Assembly (NCBI GenBank): GCA_037447605.1
Contig: CM074804.1
Location: 7,231,909-7,295,908, forward strand
DNA: 64,000 bases
Direction: 5' to 3'
Origin: Zygnema circumcarinatum SAG 698-1b
Taxonomy: Eukaryota > Plantae > Zygnematophyceae
Below the pieces are notes generated by a model. That model saw only the letters and a list, made by a program, of their open reading frames with translations. It searched no databases and was not told the origin of the DNA. Within the stretch, counting starts at the first letter, position 1, and every line of letters starts with the position of its first letter. The translations under genes and the position numbers were made by a program. Positions 11,746 to 23,592 of this stretch are shown in pieces.

Positions 11746-12260
11746 TAAGATTGCGCCAATAAAAGCAAACCATAAACGAAGAAAGGCATACAAGTTATCA
11801 CTCTACCAAACTTACAGCCAGGATAGGGAGGGAGCAGCTTCGCCCTGAGGCCCTGCCCCATCCCCTCGCAATGGAAGCACAAGCTCCCTATCACAAGGAC
11901 GGGCAACCCAGAACTTCCTTTCCATAGCGAACTAGGGAAACCTTTCTATACGTTTCTAAGGCAGACCGAGACTTGAGAAGGCGCTTCGAAGTGCCCCCCA
12001 TCTTTTACCCCTATTACTACAAAAGATTTTTCCATAAACACCATCCTGATTTTGGGAGCTAGCTGATCCCATCGGCATATGTGTAAGGAACGGATTCCTG
12101 CCCGTCCCAACGAGCAGAGAGATCAGGGAGGGTTTTGCTCCTCCAACATATTTCTTCACCTAATCTTATACAGTGTTCTCCTTCCAGCAAAATTGAACAG
12201 CATGGTGAGCTCATGCAGAGCCTGCTGGACAGCTCTAGCGGAAGTTCTAACGATTAACAC

Positions 12261-15200
12261 TCAGCCGGTGTTGCGCATGTTGCTGGCAATGGCTTTGATG
12301 GTCCGCAGCAATGGCTTCTCCCAGAGATCCAATGTCTCTGGCAATGCTTGCGGATCTCTCCTTCTCCCCAAAAGGATTACCTGAAGCAGTTTTAAGACGC
12401 AGCAGGGTCAGAGATCACCTTCCGTGATTCCCAGCTCAAGCTCAGGTGCAAGTCTGAAGATTGGATGTGAGTGGTACTTAGGGCCAAGCACATGTTTGCT
12501 CGATGTTTGGAAGGCACACAGCATATGAATGACAACAGTATGTTGAAGTCCGAGCAGAATGGGCTGAGCACCTGAATATGGTTCAGTGGATCAAGGTAGT
12601 CGCGCCGTTTTTCAAACGATTGCTTCAGTGTGGTGTTATCCTCTTGGAGAGTATTCAACTGGGCGACCATGAGGATCTGCAGGCGGCGTCTCAGGCGCAC
12701 CGTAAATGGTACAAACTCAAACTCCATTTTTCAAAAGCAGGAAACCGTATAGTCAATCTCTTTTTCAAAAGGGCATCCACCCCTCAGCTGGTACACCATT
12801 TCCAAAAGGAGCTCAGGAGAGGCATACCTGTGACTTGGTCAGCTCATACTCTCTGGCAACAACGTCATATACTAAACTCTGTGTGATGCGGTTCCTGCAC
12901 TCAAGCACAACCGAGATGCATACTGCAATCGTCACCAGGAAATGCAGGCAAACAACACCGAAGCATTCCCTCAAAACTATAATTTGTCATTGTGCGCCCA
13001 AACTCCCACATATCTTCTTTCATCCACAAAACTTCTCTTACAAACAATAGCCACCGAAAGAGGAACGTCCTAACTTACTGGCAGAGGCGCGAATATTCAT
13101 GCGCGATTTCCATGGATGCTTTGAACAACGACATCTGTTGCCCTCACTCAGAGAGTCAGCACAGGAAGAGGAACAAAAGAGCTTCCACACCAACTTTTTG
13201 CCAAGTGCAGCAGCTATTCACCTGCCTTCAAACCAATCCTGACCTCCCTCTAGACGCAAGAGATGAATAGATTTAAAAGCAACCATTGAGAAAAGGAGAG
13301 TTTTTCTGGATTCCAATATTGACCTGCACATTGGAGAGAAAGGTCCGGAAGAAGGGCCAGTCGCGGTACATTCGTTGCAGCTCTTGGATACGTTCTATGC
13401 GGTTTCCAGTGTATGCAAGTATACCAGAGCCCACTCCATACCAGCCAGGTATTGTGTGACGTGACTGCAGCAGCCCTCCCACAACACAAACTGTTAAGCT
13501 TATTTCAAACATTGGATGATCTGTTGCCGAAGAGAAACGGATAAGTTTTTGCCCACCTGAGACCAGCCGAAGACCCAAGGAATGGCTCTCAAGCTCGACT
13601 TGTCACGCACACCAGCTTTGCGGCGAGCAGGTCTGCTTCCAATGTTCATCAGTCCAATTTCATTCACAACTGTTGCTTCATAGAAATAGTCGTAAAATCC
13701 CTCTGTCTCCTCCGTCAGCTCACGGTATGCTTTCTCCGCTCCTTCCAGCACCACCTTCATCACGTCAGAGTCCTGACAGCAACGCAGAAGCTGGGGTAAG
13801 CAGACTGCTGAAGTTTAAGGATAGAGACGAGCATACCCACATGATTGCGATGCTTTTTGGATGCGGCAACTAATAAAAGCTCACTCTAATCTCCACATAA
13901 ACAGCATTCAGATTGGAAGTAGAGGTTTGACCTCAAGAGATAGAATTGGTTCTACACAATTTGAAGCTTCGTTTCTGTTCCAAAAACATTTGTCAACCGG
14001 CAGCCCGCAGGTGTATAAAATGAGTCCAAGCGGGACATTACTATGGTCTACACCAAACTCTTTCTTCTTCGTTCCACAATTTCGTACTCTCCTGTTGTAG
14101 CTCTCTCACCTCTGGACGGATGTTCTGCTGCAGCTCTGTCGCCGGATGGCTCGCTTTCATGACAGCAGTTACACCGACCTGCAGCTCTCCCAACCCACCA
14201 GTATTTGGCTATTGTGGAAATAACATAGACGCTGTTACTCTCCTGTACGCTCCCTCCCACAACATAACCTGCGAACTTGACCACATAACCATAATCACGA
14301 CCAAAGAGTTACGTTGTACCCACCGTGAGCTCATATGCTGCTGTTTCACTGTTTCCATATCGATATGTGATCACCTCCCCTTGCTCTGTAAACTTGATCT
14401 GCCCATTTACTGAACCTGATGGCTGCAAAATTCCAGCAACAACTTCCGCTCGTTACTCGTAGCTACCCCATTTCTACGCCTTCCACAATCTGCAAGCTGA
14501 ATGATTGAAGTTGCCCTACCTTTAACGTCACGAACTCAAGGGCAATCAAAAGTAAGCAGTAACCTTTTACGCCTCTCTATGATGAGCTACCTCCCCCCCC
14601 CCCCCCCCNNNNNNNNNNCCCCCCCCCCCCCCCCCCCCTTACCTGGGAGAGCACACTCTCGTGAGTGGGCCCTGCTCCCCGACCGACCGTTCCCCCCCGA
14701 CCGTGGAAGATGCGGGCACGCACTCCCGCAGCACTGGTCGTGTTTTTAATGACTTCCTGCGCCTTGTAGAGGTTGAAGGCACTTGCAGTAATGCCCCCAT
14801 CCTTGCACGAGTCCGAGTAGCCGAGCATCACTTCCTGCCAGAAACTCCACTGGTAAGTATCCTCTCGCCTACTTGCATTCAAAAGCTAGAGATTAACACC
14901 CTGCCTCTGATCGTTTTAGGGCTCAGCTTCTATTGAGAAACCAAAGAGAACTACCGTTGGAGTAAAGAGTTAGTATCCAAAGTTTTGAGGACGGGTAGAG
15001 AATGCGGAGCACACCTGCATGCCTCCGGAGGCAGTTAAGATGTCTTTGTAAGTTGCACATTCCATGAGCTGCTGTAACGCTGCTGGCATGCCCTGTTCAT
15101 GACATGGCATTTTTCTCGTTTCTTAATGGGAATACTTAGCATTTATGAGTGCCCTAGCATTTACAAAATTCAGTTTTGAGGAGCAAGAATTGGTATTTAA

Positions 15201-18200
15201 ATTACTTGAGCATTTGTGATCCTCACATGCACCAGTGCGCAACCATATGCAAACTAGTACTACCTCTTCTCCATCTACACTTCTCTCCATTATCCCTGAT
15301 CCCAATAGCCACGACGAAGTTCACACTAAATAGCAGCCGACTCCGATTGCGCCAGCTACTAAAATTTATTCAGTGCTAATATAATATTTGATGTACTCCA
15401 GAATTTTGAATCAAGGTCAACAGACTATCAATCTAAGTTAAAAAGTTGAACTTGCATCGTTTTTCCCGAAATCCAGTCTTGAAGTGAAAGGAAAGCTGTA
15501 GTCAAGCCTTGGCGAGGGAAACAGAAGGTGCATTTGAATGAACGAACCTCTAAATCAGGAATGGTCTCAAAGAGAGGAGCCACTACAAGTCGTGCATACC
15601 ACTCCCCATTTTCTCGCCTTCCGACCAGACCCCGGTTGACAAGCCATCCCAGAAATAGCACCTGCATCAGCCCGGCTCAACATGAGCAGCCATCCATGGC
15701 AGTTTCAACAACAATTCACAAGAACAGCCGGTTTGAGCCGGTTTGGTTTGGTATTCCGCACGCCACGGAGAGAGATTATATTTGCCAGAATTTCATTTTG
15801 GCTGGCCAACCCTCTACGTTGTTTGCCGGGAAGGAGAGTAGCAGCGAGAAAGGGCTTACCTCAAGCACGTGGGAGGACTGACGAGTCATTGAAATGACGT
15901 ATGAAGCAATCGCTTTTTCGGATATGTTGGCCTTGATGTTGGCAACTGCATCCAAAACCTTCACTACCTGTCGGGTGCTTTCTGTCATGCGTTCCATCAG
16001 CTCCTGCAGTCAGCAAGCAGCACAGCTCATCAAACACAGTAAAAAGGAACCTCAAGGAGCCGAAAATTGCCAACAAGAAGTTAAGGGAGCATCGGTGCCT
16101 TTATTGGCATGCATATGTAAGCAAGAAAAGGCCCAGAGCGATCACAAAAGGATTTCTTTAGTTCATTCAATTCCAGAAAAAAAGGAGGCAAGAGCTAACA
16201 TTAATCGCGGGTGGAGGAGATTTCAAGTATCGTTCCAACAGTTCCATGCGGCCCATATTGTCGAGTGCATTGTAGTCGTCCTCGCAACCCAACAGACGAA
16301 GACACTCCTCCACCGCCTGCGGCAGAACGCTGCTCATTAGTCATAAGTAAGCCAGAAATACGAACCAGAATAATAGTTAACTCTTCTGCATCGCCCATTC
16401 CTTTTAGTCTGTGCCCAGTTATGCGAAGTGTAATTCTCACCGCGGTATGCACTACTGACTCTTGCCGTACATCCAGGGCACAGAGATAAAGGCCGAAAGT
16501 CTCCGCCAGTCGCAAGAGATCCTTCAGCTTAGAATCAGCCAATCGTGCATCTCCATTTTCTCGTAGAGAAGCCTACACATGCAAGAAGACAGCTCTGCAT
16601 CATACGACCAACCTCTTATCTTACGAAGGTTTATGCAGCCCATGACAAAGAAGTCAAAGTGTGAGGGATCATCATCCACTTACATCAATGAGTTTGAGAT
16701 CTGCGAGAAACTCCTCTTCTGAAGGATACGAGTCCACTTCAGGCGCAAGCCCGGGAATGTCATCCAAACTGAACTCCAAGTCAATGAGCCATGGAGCATC
16801 CTGCCTCCGACAAATCGTTCCAACTTTCTTTGGTTGAGCTCATACATTTCGGGCAAACCCCCAGTGCATGCTTCAAATGCTCGAAGCGTTTCTATGCATG
16901 ACCGGCATTCCTGAGGCTGACCTTCCACACAGAGGCTGTTCTTAAATAACTGGCCATGAAGCATATACAAAGACAGACCCATAAGCAGCCTTAAATTCCT
17001 ACAACATTTCGTGAAGGATACATAAGCTTGACATTCACAAACAACCAGCATTTTGACAGCTGCTGATTTCACTAACCTCGAGTGCAAGATTGCTGAACTT
17101 GCGGAGCAAAGCATTCACTTTACGAATGTTCTGCTCTAACCGATGCCTCATTACTCGCAGTTTCAGTCTGTAAGGTTCCTGTGCTCAGGCCACAACCCAA
17201 CTGTCATCAGCCGGAAAATCTCTATCATTGGTGGTGACAAGAGGTGCCAATAAGTCAAATTATTCTTTTACGTGGAACACCGCCTGATGTGCTTGCAGAC
17301 AAGAAACATCTTGCAGGATTTCACAAGGGAATTCATGCCAAGTTCTGATTCTTCCCCTTTTCTCTCAAGATTTGAGCTGAAAGTCCCAAGAAAAATCAAT
17401 GGACTTCTCTTTACATGTTCAAATCGAGTGAGATCGTTTCGAATCGACGGGACATTAGCCAGCCGTTCTCGATCTCCTTCTAGAGACCCAAGCAGAGCAG
17501 GGCTGACATTGCAGATTCGCAGGGAGTGGGTAAGTGCTTCCTGCCATTAGAGCGAAACAAACAAGAATTTCAAATAACTAAAAACAAGCCGAGCCGTGCT
17601 ATTGTCAAGAGCATTGTCTACCTCGCCTGCTTACTGCTTACTGCTCACCATCATCTTGGACTATGTTGCTACACACAACAGATCCTTGACCCAGGATTGT
17701 ATACCTTCTAGGTATGCCTACTTGCGTATGTAGTTTAAGCTCAATCCAACAACCATCTCGTACCTGGCAGCTTTTGCAGCGTTTGATATATTCTGCAAGA
17801 ATAAGGCGGCTTGAAAGCAAGGCGGCAACCTCCGTCGTCTCAGGAAGCACTGCTTGCTCAGCGTGTAGAAGTCATGGAACGATTCCCACATACAAATTCC
17901 ATCCATACGTGAGAGGGATCCTTTGGCTACTTTGGACTAGCCAAAGAATTACTAGAAATCTAGAAATCTAAAAGCTAGAAATCTGATAGCTGCGGCCACT
18001 GTGAACCCGAAAAACTGCAACTCACCAAAAGGGTTGCCATCTCTGTCTCCACCAATCCACGATCCGAACTTGATGAAGCTTGGGAGCTTCAGACCTGCGT
18101 TTGGGTACACATGCTGCAAGGAGAAAGCATTGCCAACTGCCAATGAGTTTCACAAACACTGTCGAACATTCGATCAATGGGAGGCTCAGAAGCTCTGTTC

Positions 18201-21200
18201 TTCCTTAAGGTTCAATCTTTTCTGCTTTTCCTTTTCTCTGATTAGTAACATCCACTACCACTCTCGCTAAAACTTAAAGAGAACTCACTCCAAGCGAGTT
18301 TTCAGCATAACGGTAGGTGGTGCAGACTGCGTCAAATAGGGAGAGTCGGAAATAATCGAGGCCTGTTAGGACCTCTTCCAGTACGGAAGGTTTGCGTGAT
18401 CGCATTTCATCTGTCCGCCAGAGGACCTCAATCTGCATCACCCATACTTCACATCAGCAGTCTGTACAGCCCCAAATATGAGCAACTTGAATATAACTTG
18501 TAACCAGGCGTAAAACTATTATGATGAGATAGTCAAAGCACTTCATCACAAATTCAATAGGGTTTCAACGACGAGTGGAAAATTTCAAGTGCGTGAAGTC
18601 GCTAACCTCTGCTTCAACTTCTTCGTTGAGCTGTGAGAGCTGTGCAGGGCTTAAACGTGGATCCTGCATTGCAACATCATCACCACCTTTGAGAAAGCTA
18701 AATCCTCCACATGCGGTTTGGCACATAGCCTGCCATCACGTTAGCTATACAGTCAGTGTATCGTATGGTGCCAATGCAAATGCATAATACTAATGAGGTT
18801 ATACTGTTGTAGGGTTGTGTGAAATCACGTTCACGACAATTACAGTAGGACAAGGGCTATGTACGCCGTGTACAAAATGCGTTTTAGTTTGTGCCAGAGT
18901 GGCGATATAGCTTAAGAGATGAGTCCCACATAATGGCGTCGGTGAAACAAGATATCGATTAAGAGGTTGTTCAAGTTCGAGGATATAAGTCCCACAGGGA
19001 AGACTCACTCGACAAGATCATGGCGATCCAAAAGATTTCAGACTTCTTCTCGCTACAAACAAAGATTGTCTATTAAACTCGAAAGGCTTTTACAGTAAAA
19101 CACCTCTAAAGTTGTTTCCTTCGGACCAGCCCCTCATGATAACTCAAAGAGGATAAAACTTGGCATGGCATGGCATGGCATGGGCATGCATGCATGTTAC
19201 TGTAGGGTTGGATTCCTTCAGTCATATAGTATTGCAACAAGATAGGACAGCAGTTCAATGTTAAAGTTAATACAGCGGAAGGGGGAAGTTGTGCCTAGGA
19301 GCAGAGTCCTTCTATATCGTATGTACAACCTAGAAGCGGCCTTCCCCTGCATAAAGTGCCTACCTCGCGAGCTGTGCAAAGGCCAAAAATTCGATGCAAG
19401 CACTTGAGCACCTCCCGCCTTCGCGCCTCGGTGGGGTGTGCAGTAAACACTGGATTGTACTGCAGACCAGAAAGAAAGACCACTTACTAAATGCAGAGCG
19501 GAAGGGGCCCTTAAATCCAAATACCGCATCTGGTTGTCAGCATTCGAAATGGGCAAAAGAAGGATAAGCTTAAACCAATCAAGCAAATGGTTTGAGTCGG
19601 TTCAAGCGCAAACTTCGAGGAAAATCATGGCTAGAGATGCGCACCTCAATCTTATTTAACAGCTGTTGGAGCTCCTTTGGGCCCACATCTGCTTTGCGGA
19701 ACTGTCGGAATGTGTGGTCGAATGAAGCATACCAGAGCGGTGTGGCGCTGCGGGAGACCCATACCTCCTCTCTTCGCTTGCGATGAGCATGTGCTTCATC
19801 TACTATGTTGAGAAGAGACGAGTACAAGTAGTAGAGCCGGGTTACTCCCGTAACCTGCACCCAGTCAAGTTGGAATCGAGGTCCTCGTCAGAACTTCTCC
19901 TCACACGACAGTGCCCGCCATTTGATGTCTGAACCGTTTTGAGGAAAGTACATTTGAAAAGCTACTCTATGAAAGCTATGGTTTATGCTTCTGTCCTCAC
20001 AGTGGCAGCATCCATTTTGTCGATGTAGCGCAGCAATTCAGCTCGCTTGCGTGGGTCTTCTTGGTATCTGAGTAATTTGAAGCCCTTCTGCAGGAACTTG
20101 CCCTGCGAAAGATCAAGACGACACCCGTCCGGTCAGTAACAATCACCTCGAGTGAACTCGTCACTCTTAAGAACGTAGCAAATTCGACTAATGGTTGCAA
20201 GAAAAGCAGGAGTAGCATATGGGGCCAGTTACCCAACAAGCAAACCGGTAAGAATTTCCATGACGACACGGAGAACAGACTAAGGAATGGGCCATAAAAG
20301 GGTCACTCACAGCTTCCAAAATGCCAATGTCGCCGTAAGAGGCGACAACCTTCTCCAAGCACGCTGAAAGGAAAGCTTCCTGAAGCGATGATTGGTTCAC
20401 ATACAAAGACCAAGTGGAATCAGACATAGCCTTCAAGATCACAACGAAAAGGCCCACGACAGAGGGGCTCTACACTCCATGAACATGCAGCACTAATAGC
20501 ATCTGTTCAAGCTTCAAGTTGGCCCAATGCATCCTATTCATTGCCATCAAGAATGCAGTTTAAAAGTGGCACATGCTGCTTTTCTATTTGCTGTCAAAAC
20601 GCGCTGGAGTGGTACGTAAACTCTAAGAGTCCGTAGGCAGGCGGCCGATAGGGTGCGCCGTAAAATAAGCGAAAGGAGGTCCTACAGAACTGGATTGGGG
20701 ATGGCTGAGCTTTACTCGTCGGCGTAACATAATAACTCCTAAGTCCTTAATAGGCTCAACTGAAGGTAGGGTTTCCCTTGCCTTGCTGACCACTTCAAAG
20801 GACACAAATTGTGATAAATTCCTAAATATGATAGCAGAAGTAAACAACCTCTGGACGATAAGAATATAAGAGCGCTTCATCAGGGCATCGTAACATGTCA
20901 ACAAGGTCGTGTGCAGTCTAAAGTGATCGAAGAAGTCCAGAAGTCTACCATTACACTTAAAATGGCGATAGGCATTGCCATTAATGCAATGGCAAATGCC
21001 AACAAACCCAACTCGACTAAATGAAGCAGCAGATAAGTCGCACACATTCGTCTAGTTAACACGTAAACTGAACATATTAAAAACTAGTCCTGATTAAGGT
21101 GACTCATTTGACTTAAATGTATCCATGTATAAAGACTTTGAAATTTAGGTTATATTGAAAAAACTGATTGAATTCACCTTGCATCTCTATAATCGGTAAT

Positions 21201-23592
21201 CGTATACTGGATACAGAACGCTAAGGAGATAATTCGAAGATAGATTGCGCAATTCAACTCAGTGTGAACCCAATTGATCAAAGCTTCGGGACTCCAATGG
21301 AGGCGCCATAGAAGACGACTGCGTATTCCCAAGATGTGAAGATGCTAAGTTCAGTATTTGAGCAAAGAAGATACCTCCTCTTATATCAATCTAGTGCATT
21401 TGCTTGCTAGTATTTTTAATTTAGTTTTGCCCCTTCTGACATTGTTTGAAGAGCTGTTATTGCGTATTTACGCTGCTTTTATGATGGCTTGCCATGCTGG
21501 ATTAGTCAGTGGCTTGCCTATCTACCATACGGGAAGATAGCCTTCTGGCTAGCACACCACGGTTTAAAAAAAAAAAATGGTGAATTATCTACCCCAATGC
21601 AGCCAATACGGCTACGAGGTGAAGTAGCCAAATTCGTTGGTAGTGTTGTAACGCAAAGCGGCAGTCAGGAAAGAAATTGGCTTTGATCTTGCTTCCTTTT
21701 TAAGCGTAGTTAGCCATCACTCATTCTCTCCCTCCTTGGAAAGTGCATCATGCTCTGATAACCTAGTGAGGCATGCCTAATGCTGGCGGTATATGTATAT
21801 GTATATGTATATTCCTTGTCCACGAACGTCAAACGCTGACTTGACAGCTAGGCTGAACCGCATTAAGCTACCGCGTTAATGGTTATTTTTGAAGTGTTCA
21901 AAAGCTGGAGCTTGCTAACCTGCTCTGCCAATTGAGGATCCTCCTTTGACATTTGGATGCGCTTTCTCTGAGCGAGCTTTTTGAGAATGGCTGTTTGCAT
22001 TTCCTTCGAGCGCTCCATCGAGACTGCTCCCTGCGTGTCCGCATCGAGAACGACAAAGATATCCAGGACACGTTGCTGCTGTGTCATGATACGCGCCTCC
22101 TGTACACTGCTCACCAAAAAGACGAGTTTTCGTCATATAAAAGTTTGCTATGCCTAAGAGACAGTAATCCTCACAACGGAAAAAGAACAATGAACGGGGT
22201 TTACCTCTTCATTCCCTTAACAGAAGTACAAGGCAAGTCCTCAGCACTCGTAACATAGGACATCATGTCGGAAACAGTCAAAATTAAAACGCAAGCACGG
22301 GCTGTCTGTTGCAGAAAATCTATACAACACATCATTTGATGACACTTTAATAAATGCCAGAATACAATTTTAACGTTAGGCCAACTATGACATAAAGTTA
22401 TCCTGGGGCATCGGAGTTGTAAACTACTTCCTCCATAAACAATTCATAAATAGCCTGTAACACAATTCAGAAGTTACCTCCGTATGCCCACTTGCTTGAA
22501 ATAGAGATGGCAAAAGCAAAATTACGTTGACTTCATCAAAAGTTACTGCGAAAATAATTCTCTTGCTGCTTAGCGAGGGATGATTAGACATGCCTGAGAT
22601 TAAAGCTGCTAAAGACAGTTGTAACGTCCACCAGCAGGTCTTCCTGATGCACTCCCTGCAACTCCACTACCGTGGCTCCAGGACTGCTCTCATTGTCAAC
22701 TCGAACTGAAAAGTCCAATTCTACATCCGAAAGCGATGATGCGCCATTCCCGTTTGAGCCGTTTGCTGCGATTCCCAGAGCTGGCGCAGAGCCATCCAGG
22801 GAAGAAGCAGCTGGTTCCACCGAGCCACCCACATTGGCGGTGCACTCTGTTGCTCTGACTTTCCGCGAGCTGAGATCTCCTTGAAGCCCGTTAAAAAACA
22901 ATTGCTGTCAGTAATACAGTCCCACCTTTGAAAGAGCTCAGAAGTTATAGGAAATAAGGAAAAAATGGGCGTACATCACCTGTGCTATCACACCGTAACT
23001 GTAAAGGACGCGAAAAAGGAGGAAAAACAGAAATACAGGAAAATGCAATCCGAATTTAGGAGGAAAACAAAAACAGGTGGTAAATTAGACTCTTATATGA
23101 AGCTCATTTATGAATTCGATCCACGAAAAGTCATCACCTGGAAGCTCCCGGCAATGAACTGAGTCCATGATTGTGCACTTTCAGAGGTTCTCCAAAGAGC
23201 CAAGTGCTTCCAGTCGGCTTGATCTGCTGTCCCCAAGCAGGAGAGCAAGATTCAGGCAGCAAAAACACTTCAGCTGCAGCGTTTGCGAGACGTTTGCTTT
23301 CCTGGCCTCGCAAACGTTTGTCGGTTGCAGAAAGTGTGCCTCACCTGCTTAGGCGAAAGATGGCTGGAAATATCTGATCCAGATGAAAAGAAGCACCTGC
23401 AATGCAGAGAACAACAACATTCCGCAATGCATTTCCAATGTCATTTCACGGATACGATTTGCCCATTATGGCATGCAAAAGGAAAGAGAGGCAGACGCGA
23501 ATCTATTCGCTACTGGAAAAAAAAAGAACAATCGAGCTGCACAGTCCGCACCCCGGCAGAGTGAGCGTCCTGCACGCCATCCTGGCCGCCAT
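12261..23592 (-). CDS. PPC: Phosphoenolpyruvate carboxylase with N-terminal transit peptide and ACT domain; about 30 exons
   Basis: All PEPC motifs occur in order: [11 protein letters not shown] (exon 19459-19364), [116 protein letters not shown] and C-terminal MRNTG* (stop 12263-12261). 5' exons 23592-23552, 23396-23345, 23223-23138, 22869-22594, 22106-21920, 20379-20311 and 20102-20001 splice in phase. The first three of these are less certain. Confidence 0.95.
14593..14637. other. Poly-C tract with assembly gap (N) inside a PEPC intron
   Basis: C-run interrupted by n characters, directly after the donor of the GRGG exon. Confidence 0.95.

Follow-up and report, generated by a model that had tools for sequence, protein, structure and literature searches.

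The window analysed here is a stretch of 64,000 nucleotides of the genome of Zygnema circumcarinatum SAG 698-1b (assembly GCA_037447605.1, contig CM074804.1, positions 7,231,909 to 7,295,908 of the forward strand). It is intron-rich eukaryotic DNA with a G+C content of 44-59% and carries, on its minus strand, a multi-exon gene for phosphoenolpyruvate carboxylase (PEPC), the core of which runs from 20379 to 12261. The PEPC family of plants has been described as comprising two clades, the plant-type (PTPC) and the bacterial-type (BTPC) enzymes (PMC5854131, Isoetes genome preprint, PMC4196954). The window gene is read here, with a probability of roughly 0.8, as a catalytically intact member of a third class, old in the green lineage, which would descend from a single ancient transfer from a gammaproteobacterium to a green alga, followed by domestication and by loss in euphyllophytes. 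The class, for which the working name ACT-PEPC is used, is present in prasinophytes, Mesostigma, Chlorokybus, zygnematophytes, mosses, liverworts and a lycophyte and, according to a published table (PMC8784020), in a hornwort. Its nearest relatives are gammaproteobacterial PEPCs, mostly of sulfur oxidisers and methylotrophs; PTPC and BTPC group with E. coli-type enzymes.

The relatives were collected by several searches. An exhaustive HMMER search with the most conserved exon returned one full-length close relative, P0009, a protein of 1180 amino acids from the moss Ceratodon. A word search with the core of P0009 found 16 other plant and algal clusters (Ceratodon, Physcomitrium, Sphagnum, Diphasiastrum, three liverworts, Spirogloea, Mesotaenium, Chlorokybus, Mesostigma, Pterosperma and algal transcripts), directly followed, among the best 120 matches, by gammaproteobacteria at 47-50% identity (Thiohalobacter, Sulfurivermis, Thiohalomonadaceae and Acidiferrobacterales). 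None of these 120 was a PTPC or a BTPC; nor did a BTPC stand among the best 150 matches of the exon search or the best 120 of either word search. A protein-cluster search returned generic bacterial PEPC clusters only. When one bacterial genome per species was scanned, the neighbours were Thiohalomonas denitrificans, Halochromatium, Thiohalocapsa, Ectothiorhodospiraceae, Methylophaga, Cocleimonas, Thiomargarita, Competibacter, Thiodiazotropha and Thiobacillus. Sequence identity to the window protein amounts to 72% for P0158 (a protein from a streptophyte transcriptome), 64% for P0009 of moss, 48% for the Thiohalobacter enzyme and 31-32% for PTPC and E. coli PEPC; for the algal transcript P0293 it is 81% over the columns used for the tree. 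Every identified member of ACT-PEPC comes from a green alga or a land plant.

Three kinds of PEPC gene can also be recognised in the supplement of PMC8784020. Spirogloea is listed there with three PRK00009-type genes (about 1126 amino acids, domain from residue 19), which are of the BTPC type, with three PTPC genes and with three genes in which the domain starts at about residue 370. In Marchantia polymorpha and in Anthoceros each kind is represented by a single gene, and Physcomitrella has six PTPC loci and Pp3c12_10250 (domain 361-1179). The third kind, with a start near residue 360, was tabled as 'PEPcase superfamily' and left out of the analysis of that paper. Two Spirogloea entries of the table, SM000126S26288 and SM000312S11989, are P0160 and P0161 of the tree described below.

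The main tree was calculated with IQ-TREE under LG+C20+F+G4 by the posterior mean site frequency method from an alignment of 938 columns and 70 rows; support is given as ultrafast bootstrap and Shimodaira-Hasegawa-like approximate likelihood ratio (SH-aLRT) values. Its PTPC-type rows stem from a search that started from a PEPC of a red alga. The ACT-PEPC proteins form a eukaryote-only clade (support 100/100, stem 0.64), which lies inside a larger clade (100/100) otherwise made up of gammaproteobacteria. Within ACT-PEPC the prasinophytes branch off before Chlorokybus and Mesostigma, and the zygnematophytes, including the window protein (100/97), are sister to the embryophytes (100/100). Two proteins, P0164 (MMETSP, 1215 amino acids) and P0171 (ENA, 1006 amino acids), are basal in the clade and lie outside the identified green groups; the organisms from which they come would tell whether the class reaches beyond green algae. 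Green PTPC (100/100) is found in a separate 100/100 clade that also holds red algal, chytrid, Euglena, dictyostelid and E. coli-type bacterial sequences. A tree in which all green-plant PEPCs are constrained to one group is worse by 488 log-likelihood units and is rejected by the approximately unbiased (AU) test (p 5.4e-42).

BTPCs for comparison were obtained by matching metagenome contigs against a degenerate DNA pattern for the BTPC motif PTQINRRTLQYK, which served as a search lead only; hits were accepted on their own features. Ten full open reading frames (ORFs) of 1059-1077 amino acids start with MTDT(T/V)DDIAEEISFQ, end with AAGMRNTG and contain AHPTQ and either GYSDSGKDAG or GYSDSGKDSG. 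They have 293-311 amino acids between GGDRDGNP and DLRQE, which corresponds to an insert of about 140 amino acids. BTPCs have been defined by an (R/K)NTG C-terminus and by the lack of an N-terminal phosphoserine motif, and they carry an intrinsically disordered insert of about 10 kDa, residues 325-467 in castor (PMC5854131). In their best segments the BTPCs are 46-48% identical to PTPC and E. coli PEPC as against 35-38% to ACT-PEPC. The BTPC gene on a genomic contig, L129, has 20 exons, in agreement with the published number of about 20. L129 is an angiosperm-like contig, in contrast to the metagenome contigs L112, L114, L118, L127 and L131 (12-22 kb), each of which carries an uninterrupted BTPC ORF of 1066-1068 amino acids with about 49% G+C; the ORF of L112 is flanked by AT-rich DNA without long ORFs, which suggests a BTPC copy without introns in a genome of plant-like character. 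P0093 (964 amino acids), a match of the exon search, was rejected as an algal BTPC seed, its low-complexity insert lying elsewhere and the protein grouping with alpha- and beta-proteobacterial types rather than with PTPC, BTPC or ACT-PEPC. It has the long Ala/Gly/Ser inserts typical of green-algal nuclear genes and may represent a further independent eukaryotic PEPC lineage.

In a second tree of 47 rows including six BTPCs, made by a 'quick' search with SH-aLRT support only, the BTPCs (100) are sister (94) to the eukaryotic PTPC-like clade within the E. coli-type group (100), and ACT-PEPC still stands with the gammaproteobacteria (100). Union of ACT-PEPC with BTPC costs 510 log-likelihood units (AU p 1.3e-6). 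The original prediction, made from the letters of the window, had proposed a PEPC core of non-plant bacterial lineage, acquired by ancient horizontal transfer, and a possible third type of PEPC in green plants. The separate clade and the rejection of both unions bear out the third type, and the nesting among gammaproteobacteria argues for the transfer, as far as tree topology can; the maximum-likelihood trees and AU tests place the protein inside neither PTPC nor BTPC.

Seven exon pieces of the window gene match the Pfam PEPcase family PF00311 with E values of 1e-6 to 1e-31. The exons were modelled with P0009 and P0158, the closest full-length relatives, as guides, each junction being optimised for reading frame, GT/GC-AG ends and similarity to the guides. 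E. coli PEPC was dropped as a guide in favour of these two, as it is too distant for small exons. The model comprises 27 exons, of which 25 make up the PEPC core, with introns that are all GT-AG, and two lie upstream in the ACT region; 25 of the 26 spliceosomal introns are GT-AG and one is GC-AG. In Ceratodon and in Marchantia paleacea the orthologue consists of 31 exons; one of the introns present there is missing from the window gene. Since three short 5' exons are probably conserved as in the orthologues, in addition to the 25 core and two ACT exons, the whole gene probably has about 30 exons and 29 introns. Evidence from RNA, given below as joints, consists of contigs of four public runs (three studies, one organism) aligned to 12200-18199. 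The features, in the direction of transcription, are as follows.

23509-23580, minus strand: probable start codon (23580) and first short exon, with approximate boundaries; suggested by similarity to the P0158 N-terminus in tblastn, which is weak (37%); the orthologues open with a 38-nt exon.
22594-22784, minus strand: first ACT-domain exon, 3' part (the ORF continues to 22901), with a GC donor at 22594; tblastn to P0158, P0293 and P0009; moss and liverwort have the intron at the same column and phase.
21920-22106, minus strand: second ACT-domain exon, 187 nt, equal in size to exon 5 of Ceratodon and Marchantia; the orthologues match GlnD-type ACT models here.
20311-20379, minus strand: core exon 1, 69 nt; junction optimisation against P0158; size and introns match moss; the 3' intron coincides with a PTPC intron.
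20001-20102, minus strand: core exon 2, 102 nt, with a 20-residue segment quoted in the original prediction; junction optimisation.
19645-19854, minus strand: core exon 3, 210 nt, with a quoted 28-residue segment, equal to moss exons of 90 and 120 nt with one intron absent; junction optimisation and orthologue comparison.
19364-19459, minus strand: core exon 4, 96 nt, with a quoted 19-residue segment and the TAHPTE catalytic histidine motif; junction optimisation.
18607-18663, minus strand: core exon 5, 57 nt; the 3' intron coincides with a PTPC intron; junction optimisation.
18289-18432, minus strand: core exon 6, 144 nt, with WRTDEMR; junction optimisation.
18026-18113, minus strand: core exon 7, 88 nt, followed by a phase-1 intron; the RNA contigs match up to 18113 and then continue into sequence without a match, as a joint would produce.
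17764-17849, minus strand: core exon 8, 86 nt; junction optimisation, RNA depth present.
17415-17540, minus strand: core exon 9, 126 nt; junction optimisation and RNA.
17077-17178, minus strand: core exon 10, 102 nt, with a quoted 14-residue segment; RNA joint 16800/17077.
16684-16800, minus strand: core exon 11, 117 nt; RNA joints 16572/16684 and 16800/17077.
16441-16572, minus strand: core exon 12, 132 nt, with LDVRQES; RNA joints.
16200-16316, minus strand: core exon 13, 117 nt; RNA joints 16003/16200 and 16316/16441.
15860-16003, minus strand: core exon 14, 144 nt, with YVISMTR; RNA joints.
15548-15661, minus strand: core exon 15, 114 nt, with the metal-binding Glu; RNA joints 15092/15548 and 15661/15860.
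15015-15092, minus strand: core exon 16, 78 nt; RNA joints 14834/15015 and 15092/15548.
14643-14834, minus strand: core exon 17, 192 nt, with the quoted 10-residue signature; Pfam E 9e-31; RNA joints 14422/14643 and 14834/15015.
14423-14642, minus strand: intron holding an assembly gap (N at 14609-14618) in a poly-G tract, seen in the sequence; spliced out in transcript contigs of four runs.
14324-14422, minus strand: core exon 18, 99 nt, with YELT spliced onward across 14324/14178; RNA joints.
14110-14178, minus strand: core exon 19, 69 nt; RNA joints 13772/14110 and 14178/14324.
13557-13772, minus strand: core exon 20, 216 nt, with GSRPARR; Pfam E 2e-25; RNA joints.
13324-13464, minus strand: core exon 21, 141 nt; RNA joints 13134/13324 and 13464/13557.
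13079-13134, minus strand: core exon 22, 56 nt, followed by a phase-2 intron; RNA joints.
12828-12894, minus strand: core exon 23, 67 nt; RNA joints.
12572-12676, minus strand: core exon 24, 105 nt; RNA joints.
12261-12380, minus strand: last exon, 117 nt and stop, with a quoted 20-residue segment, protein end MRNTG; junction optimisation and RNA joint 12380/12572.

Transcription of the gene and the modelled splicing are borne out by the RNA. The contigs of the four runs contain about one third of the words of the stretch, which is the exonic share. Single transcript contigs of 3.9-4.1 kb contain the joint 14422/14643 and at least 14 further predicted joints with zero mismatches, and the transcript joints are all at the predicted positions, with CT..AC ends on the plus strand. 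The assembly gap leaves the coding sequence untouched: the exons on its two sides join in phase 0 (LSQ/PSGS), continuous with every homologue, the exon ending in LSQ being followed by gtaagg and the exon beginning with PSGSVNGQ being preceded by ttttgcag. At 14590-14640, a homopolymer (C on the plus strand), low-depth unspliced contigs differ in run length, and the length of the tract is uncertain or variable. The intron between the two ACT exons (22594/22106) has an apparent GC donor (TCTCAG/gcatgt). The single exon at 19645-19854, which stands against two exons of 90 and 120 nt in bryophytes, reflects either a loss of an intron in the alga or a gain in embryophytes.

The equivalents of E. 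coli H138, R396, E506, D543, H579, R581, R587, R699, R713, K773, R832 and N881 are all kept in the window protein, so that both catalytic and aspartate-site residues are conserved, and the catalytic and metal-binding residues are likewise conserved in the orthologues. In the E. coli and maize structures H138, R396, E506, D543, H579, R581, R587, R699 and R713 (E. coli numbering) serve catalysis and metal binding. Two orthologues, P0009 and P0158, score 832 and 819 bits over the full length of NF000584, the NCBIfam PEPC equivalog, whose cut-off is 815. The window gene is therefore predicted to encode a catalytically intact PEP carboxylase, which would convert PEP and bicarbonate into oxaloacetate and phosphate. 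Upstream of the core the orthologues match GlnD-type ACT models, and this region is represented in collinear order by the window exons 22784-22594 and 22106-21920; the N-terminal part of the window model is thus a probable ACT domain behind a leader. The SIDAQ phosphorylation motif of PTPC was found neither in the window model nor in the orthologues.

The 10-residue signature of exon 17 occurs in 20 of the 21 members of the eukaryotic clade, in 86 of the 98 gammaproteobacterial proteins from the P0009 word search and at 18 of the 22 closest genome loci (L002-L023), and in 0 of 119 PTPC-type sequences; a Synechococcus PEPC reads GYSDSNKDSG. Between GGDRDGNP and D[IV]RQE there are 186 amino acids in the window protein, 165 in a gammaproteobacterial relative and 163 in PTPC. 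Because the same segment measures 293-311 amino acids in the ten BTPCs, the BTPC insert is absent from the window protein. The peptide segments on which the original prediction was built are all present on the minus strand within modelled exons. The contrast it drew with plant-type (GYSDSGKDAG, QNTG) and cyanobacterial (GYSDSNKDSG) motifs agrees with these counts and with the MRNTG end, and its figure of about 29 introns is right for the whole gene, given the three conserved 5' exons.

Intron positions bear both on the age of the gene and on its independence from the other plant PEPCs. In Ceratodon and Marchantia paleacea, 25 of the 26 window introns are found in the same column and phase, and the 26th is three columns off. 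Because the class branches in the order of the species tree and the introns of the alga and the bryophytes are nearly identical, the gene appears to have been inherited vertically at least since the ancestor of chlorophytes and streptophytes, as expected of the old, domesticated gene that had been proposed. Bacterial contamination, discounted in the same proposal, or a recent transfer private to the Zygnema alga is hardly credible. The closest non-plant matches are indeed bacterial, but the modelled part of the gene has 26 spliceosomal introns and spliced transcripts in four runs, shares 25 intron positions with moss and liverwort, and has orthologues across green plants in species-tree order. 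It is also very improbable that the gene is a divergent orthologue of the known BTPC (AtPPC4-like). Such an orthologue would account for the RNTG end, the lack of the PTPC N-terminal phosphoserine motif and the richness in introns; however, BTPC forms a separate clade (AU p 1.3e-6), its insert is absent, none of the 19 BTPC introns of L129 coincides with a window-gene intron, and genes of the BTPC type and the ACT-PEPC type coexist in Spirogloea, Marchantia and Anthoceros. Eight BTPC introns share the phase of an ACT-PEPC intron no more than six codons away, where 4.3 would be expected (P 0.037); three of the eight are one codon off.

Several observations weigh against a wholly independent bacterial origin or against parts of the history built on it. 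The main one is that, of the nine introns in a PTPC gene from a land plant (L084), two fall at the exact column and phase of window introns (permutation P 0.009). These are 20311/20102 and 18607/18432, both of phase 0 and in well-aligned sequence. Three more PTPC introns are 3-6 codons from window-gene introns (P 0.013-0.015), and the three BTPC introns just mentioned are one codon away. Common intron ancestry would contradict an independent bacterial origin. The coincidences with PTPC are what would be expected if ACT-PEPC, PTPC and BTPC were ancient eukaryotic paralogues of one intron-bearing gene and both bacterial groups had taken their genes from eukaryotes. This is quite unlikely: both AU tests reject the union, and diverse bacteria surround each eukaryotic clade. 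The sister clades PTPC and BTPC have no intron in common, nor do the land-plant PTPC and the chlorophyte PTPC-like gene, which indicates that intron positions turn over in the PEPC family. The two coincident introns are accordingly read, with some reserve, as parallel gains at favoured sites, which explain them more easily than shared descent. Of the intron comparisons that the original prediction had proposed as a check, that with BTPC thus agrees with a separate gene, and that with PTPC shows an overlap above chance, 2 of 9 positions as against the 25 of 26 shared with moss and liverwort; neither refutes the prediction.

The remaining points concern sampling and resolution. The BTPC rows are ORFs of metagenome contigs identified by their features rather than annotated plant records, and the tree that contains them is the smaller one from the quick search. 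The gammaproteobacterial sister of ACT-PEPC is a polytomy, so that no donor lineage can be named; the Chromatiales/Thiotrichales-like affinity suggested earlier does match the nearest named bacteria. No ACT-PEPC of a fern or seed plant appeared in the ranked hit lists, which do not amount to an exhaustive search, and the Azolla gene Azfi_s0006.g010453 (domain 205-932, PMC8784020), which may be a fern member or a fragment, bears on the loss in euphyllophytes. The sampling of red algae and glaucophytes extends no further than the sequences that the searches yielded, and for this reason an older origin followed by losses is conceivable. The gene would then have been present in the ancestor of Archaeplastida, or have come from an early endosymbiont or associated bacterium, and have been lost in red algae, glaucophytes and euphyllophytes; ACT-PEPC would still be a third class, but the transfer would not be specific to the green lineage. 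The position of P0164 and P0171 outside the identified green groups and the limited sampling of non-green algae speak for such an origin; it is nevertheless unlikely, the identified members being all green and the recovered red algal PEPCs all PTPC-like.

The most economical history remains a single ancient transfer from a bacterium to an early green alga, to which the topology of the tree points. Spliceosomal introns, an N-terminal leader and the ACT domain would have been gained after the transfer, and ACT-PEPC would have been lost later in euphyllophytes. With somewhat better than even odds, this history can be given a fuller form, in which a donor of the sulfur-oxidiser type contributed the gene before the split of chlorophytes and streptophytes, the gene acquired some 30 introns, an organelle leader and an ACT domain that may sense amino acids, its product still serves algae, bryophytes and lycophytes as a separately regulated, possibly plastid, anaplerotic enzyme, and the gene disappeared in the common ancestor of ferns and seed plants.

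A partial precedent exists. Peng et al. 2012 (PMC3521007) listed the Physcomitrella protein A9SLH0, on a 1.5-Mb scaffold, as a candidate for inter-kingdom transfer that clusters within bacterial branches. A9SLH0 is very probably the moss ACT-PEPC Pp3c12_10250, by elimination, the six other moss PEPCs of that paper matching the six PTPC loci. It was handled there as a single odd sequence, and no class, ACT fusion, introns or nearest bacteria were described. No paper found in the literature search treats these PEPCs as a third, conserved class or describes the distribution, the introns or the fused ACT domain of such a class. What is new is thus the assignment of the window gene to a third green-lineage PEPC class, unrecognised in the searched literature apart from this precedent. 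Such a class alters the reading of PEPC gene counts in algae and bryophytes. It bears on the history of carbon-nitrogen anaplerosis as a clean, datable ancient transfer from bacterium to alga with full domestication. It also makes the location of the enzyme, the ligand of the ACT domain and the reason for the loss in euphyllophytes testable, with Marchantia and Physcomitrium as tractable models.

Among known genes the window gene is closest to its uncharacterised orthologues Physcomitrium XP_024391121 (Pp3c12_10250), Ceratodon KC19_4G171700, Marchantia paleacea Mapa_013050, Diphasiastrum O6H91_05G059400 and Spirogloea SM000126S26288, identifiers that occur in the main text of no searchable paper. 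It shares with the orthologues the 100/100 clade, 64-72% identity over the whole alignment (P0009 and P0158), the ACT region, the RNTG end and 25 of 26 introns, and differs from those of bryophytes in lacking one intron (within 19645-19854). With the gammaproteobacterial PEPCs (Thiohalomonas denitrificans, Thiohalobacter, Halochromatium, Ectothiorhodospiraceae, Methylophaga, Thiotrichales) it has in common a core of 46-49% identity, the signature, AHPTE, the RNTG end and the order of domains; the bacterial enzymes have no introns, leader or ACT domain, and their GGDRDGNP-DIRQE segment is about 20 amino acids shorter. Like plant BTPC (AtPPC4, castor RcPPC4), it has an (R/K)NTG end, no phosphoserine motif, many exons and a 'bacterial-like' sequence (PMC5854131), but it stands in a separate clade, lacks the disordered insert of about 140 amino acids, has 35-38% best-segment identity and no introns in common with BTPC, and begins with another N-terminus. 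PTPC belongs to the same enzyme family and shares the catalytic residues and the two coincident introns; it differs in its identity of about 31-32%, its QNTG end, GYSDSGKDAG and AHPTQ motifs, its separate clade and its 10 exons as against about 30 in the window gene.

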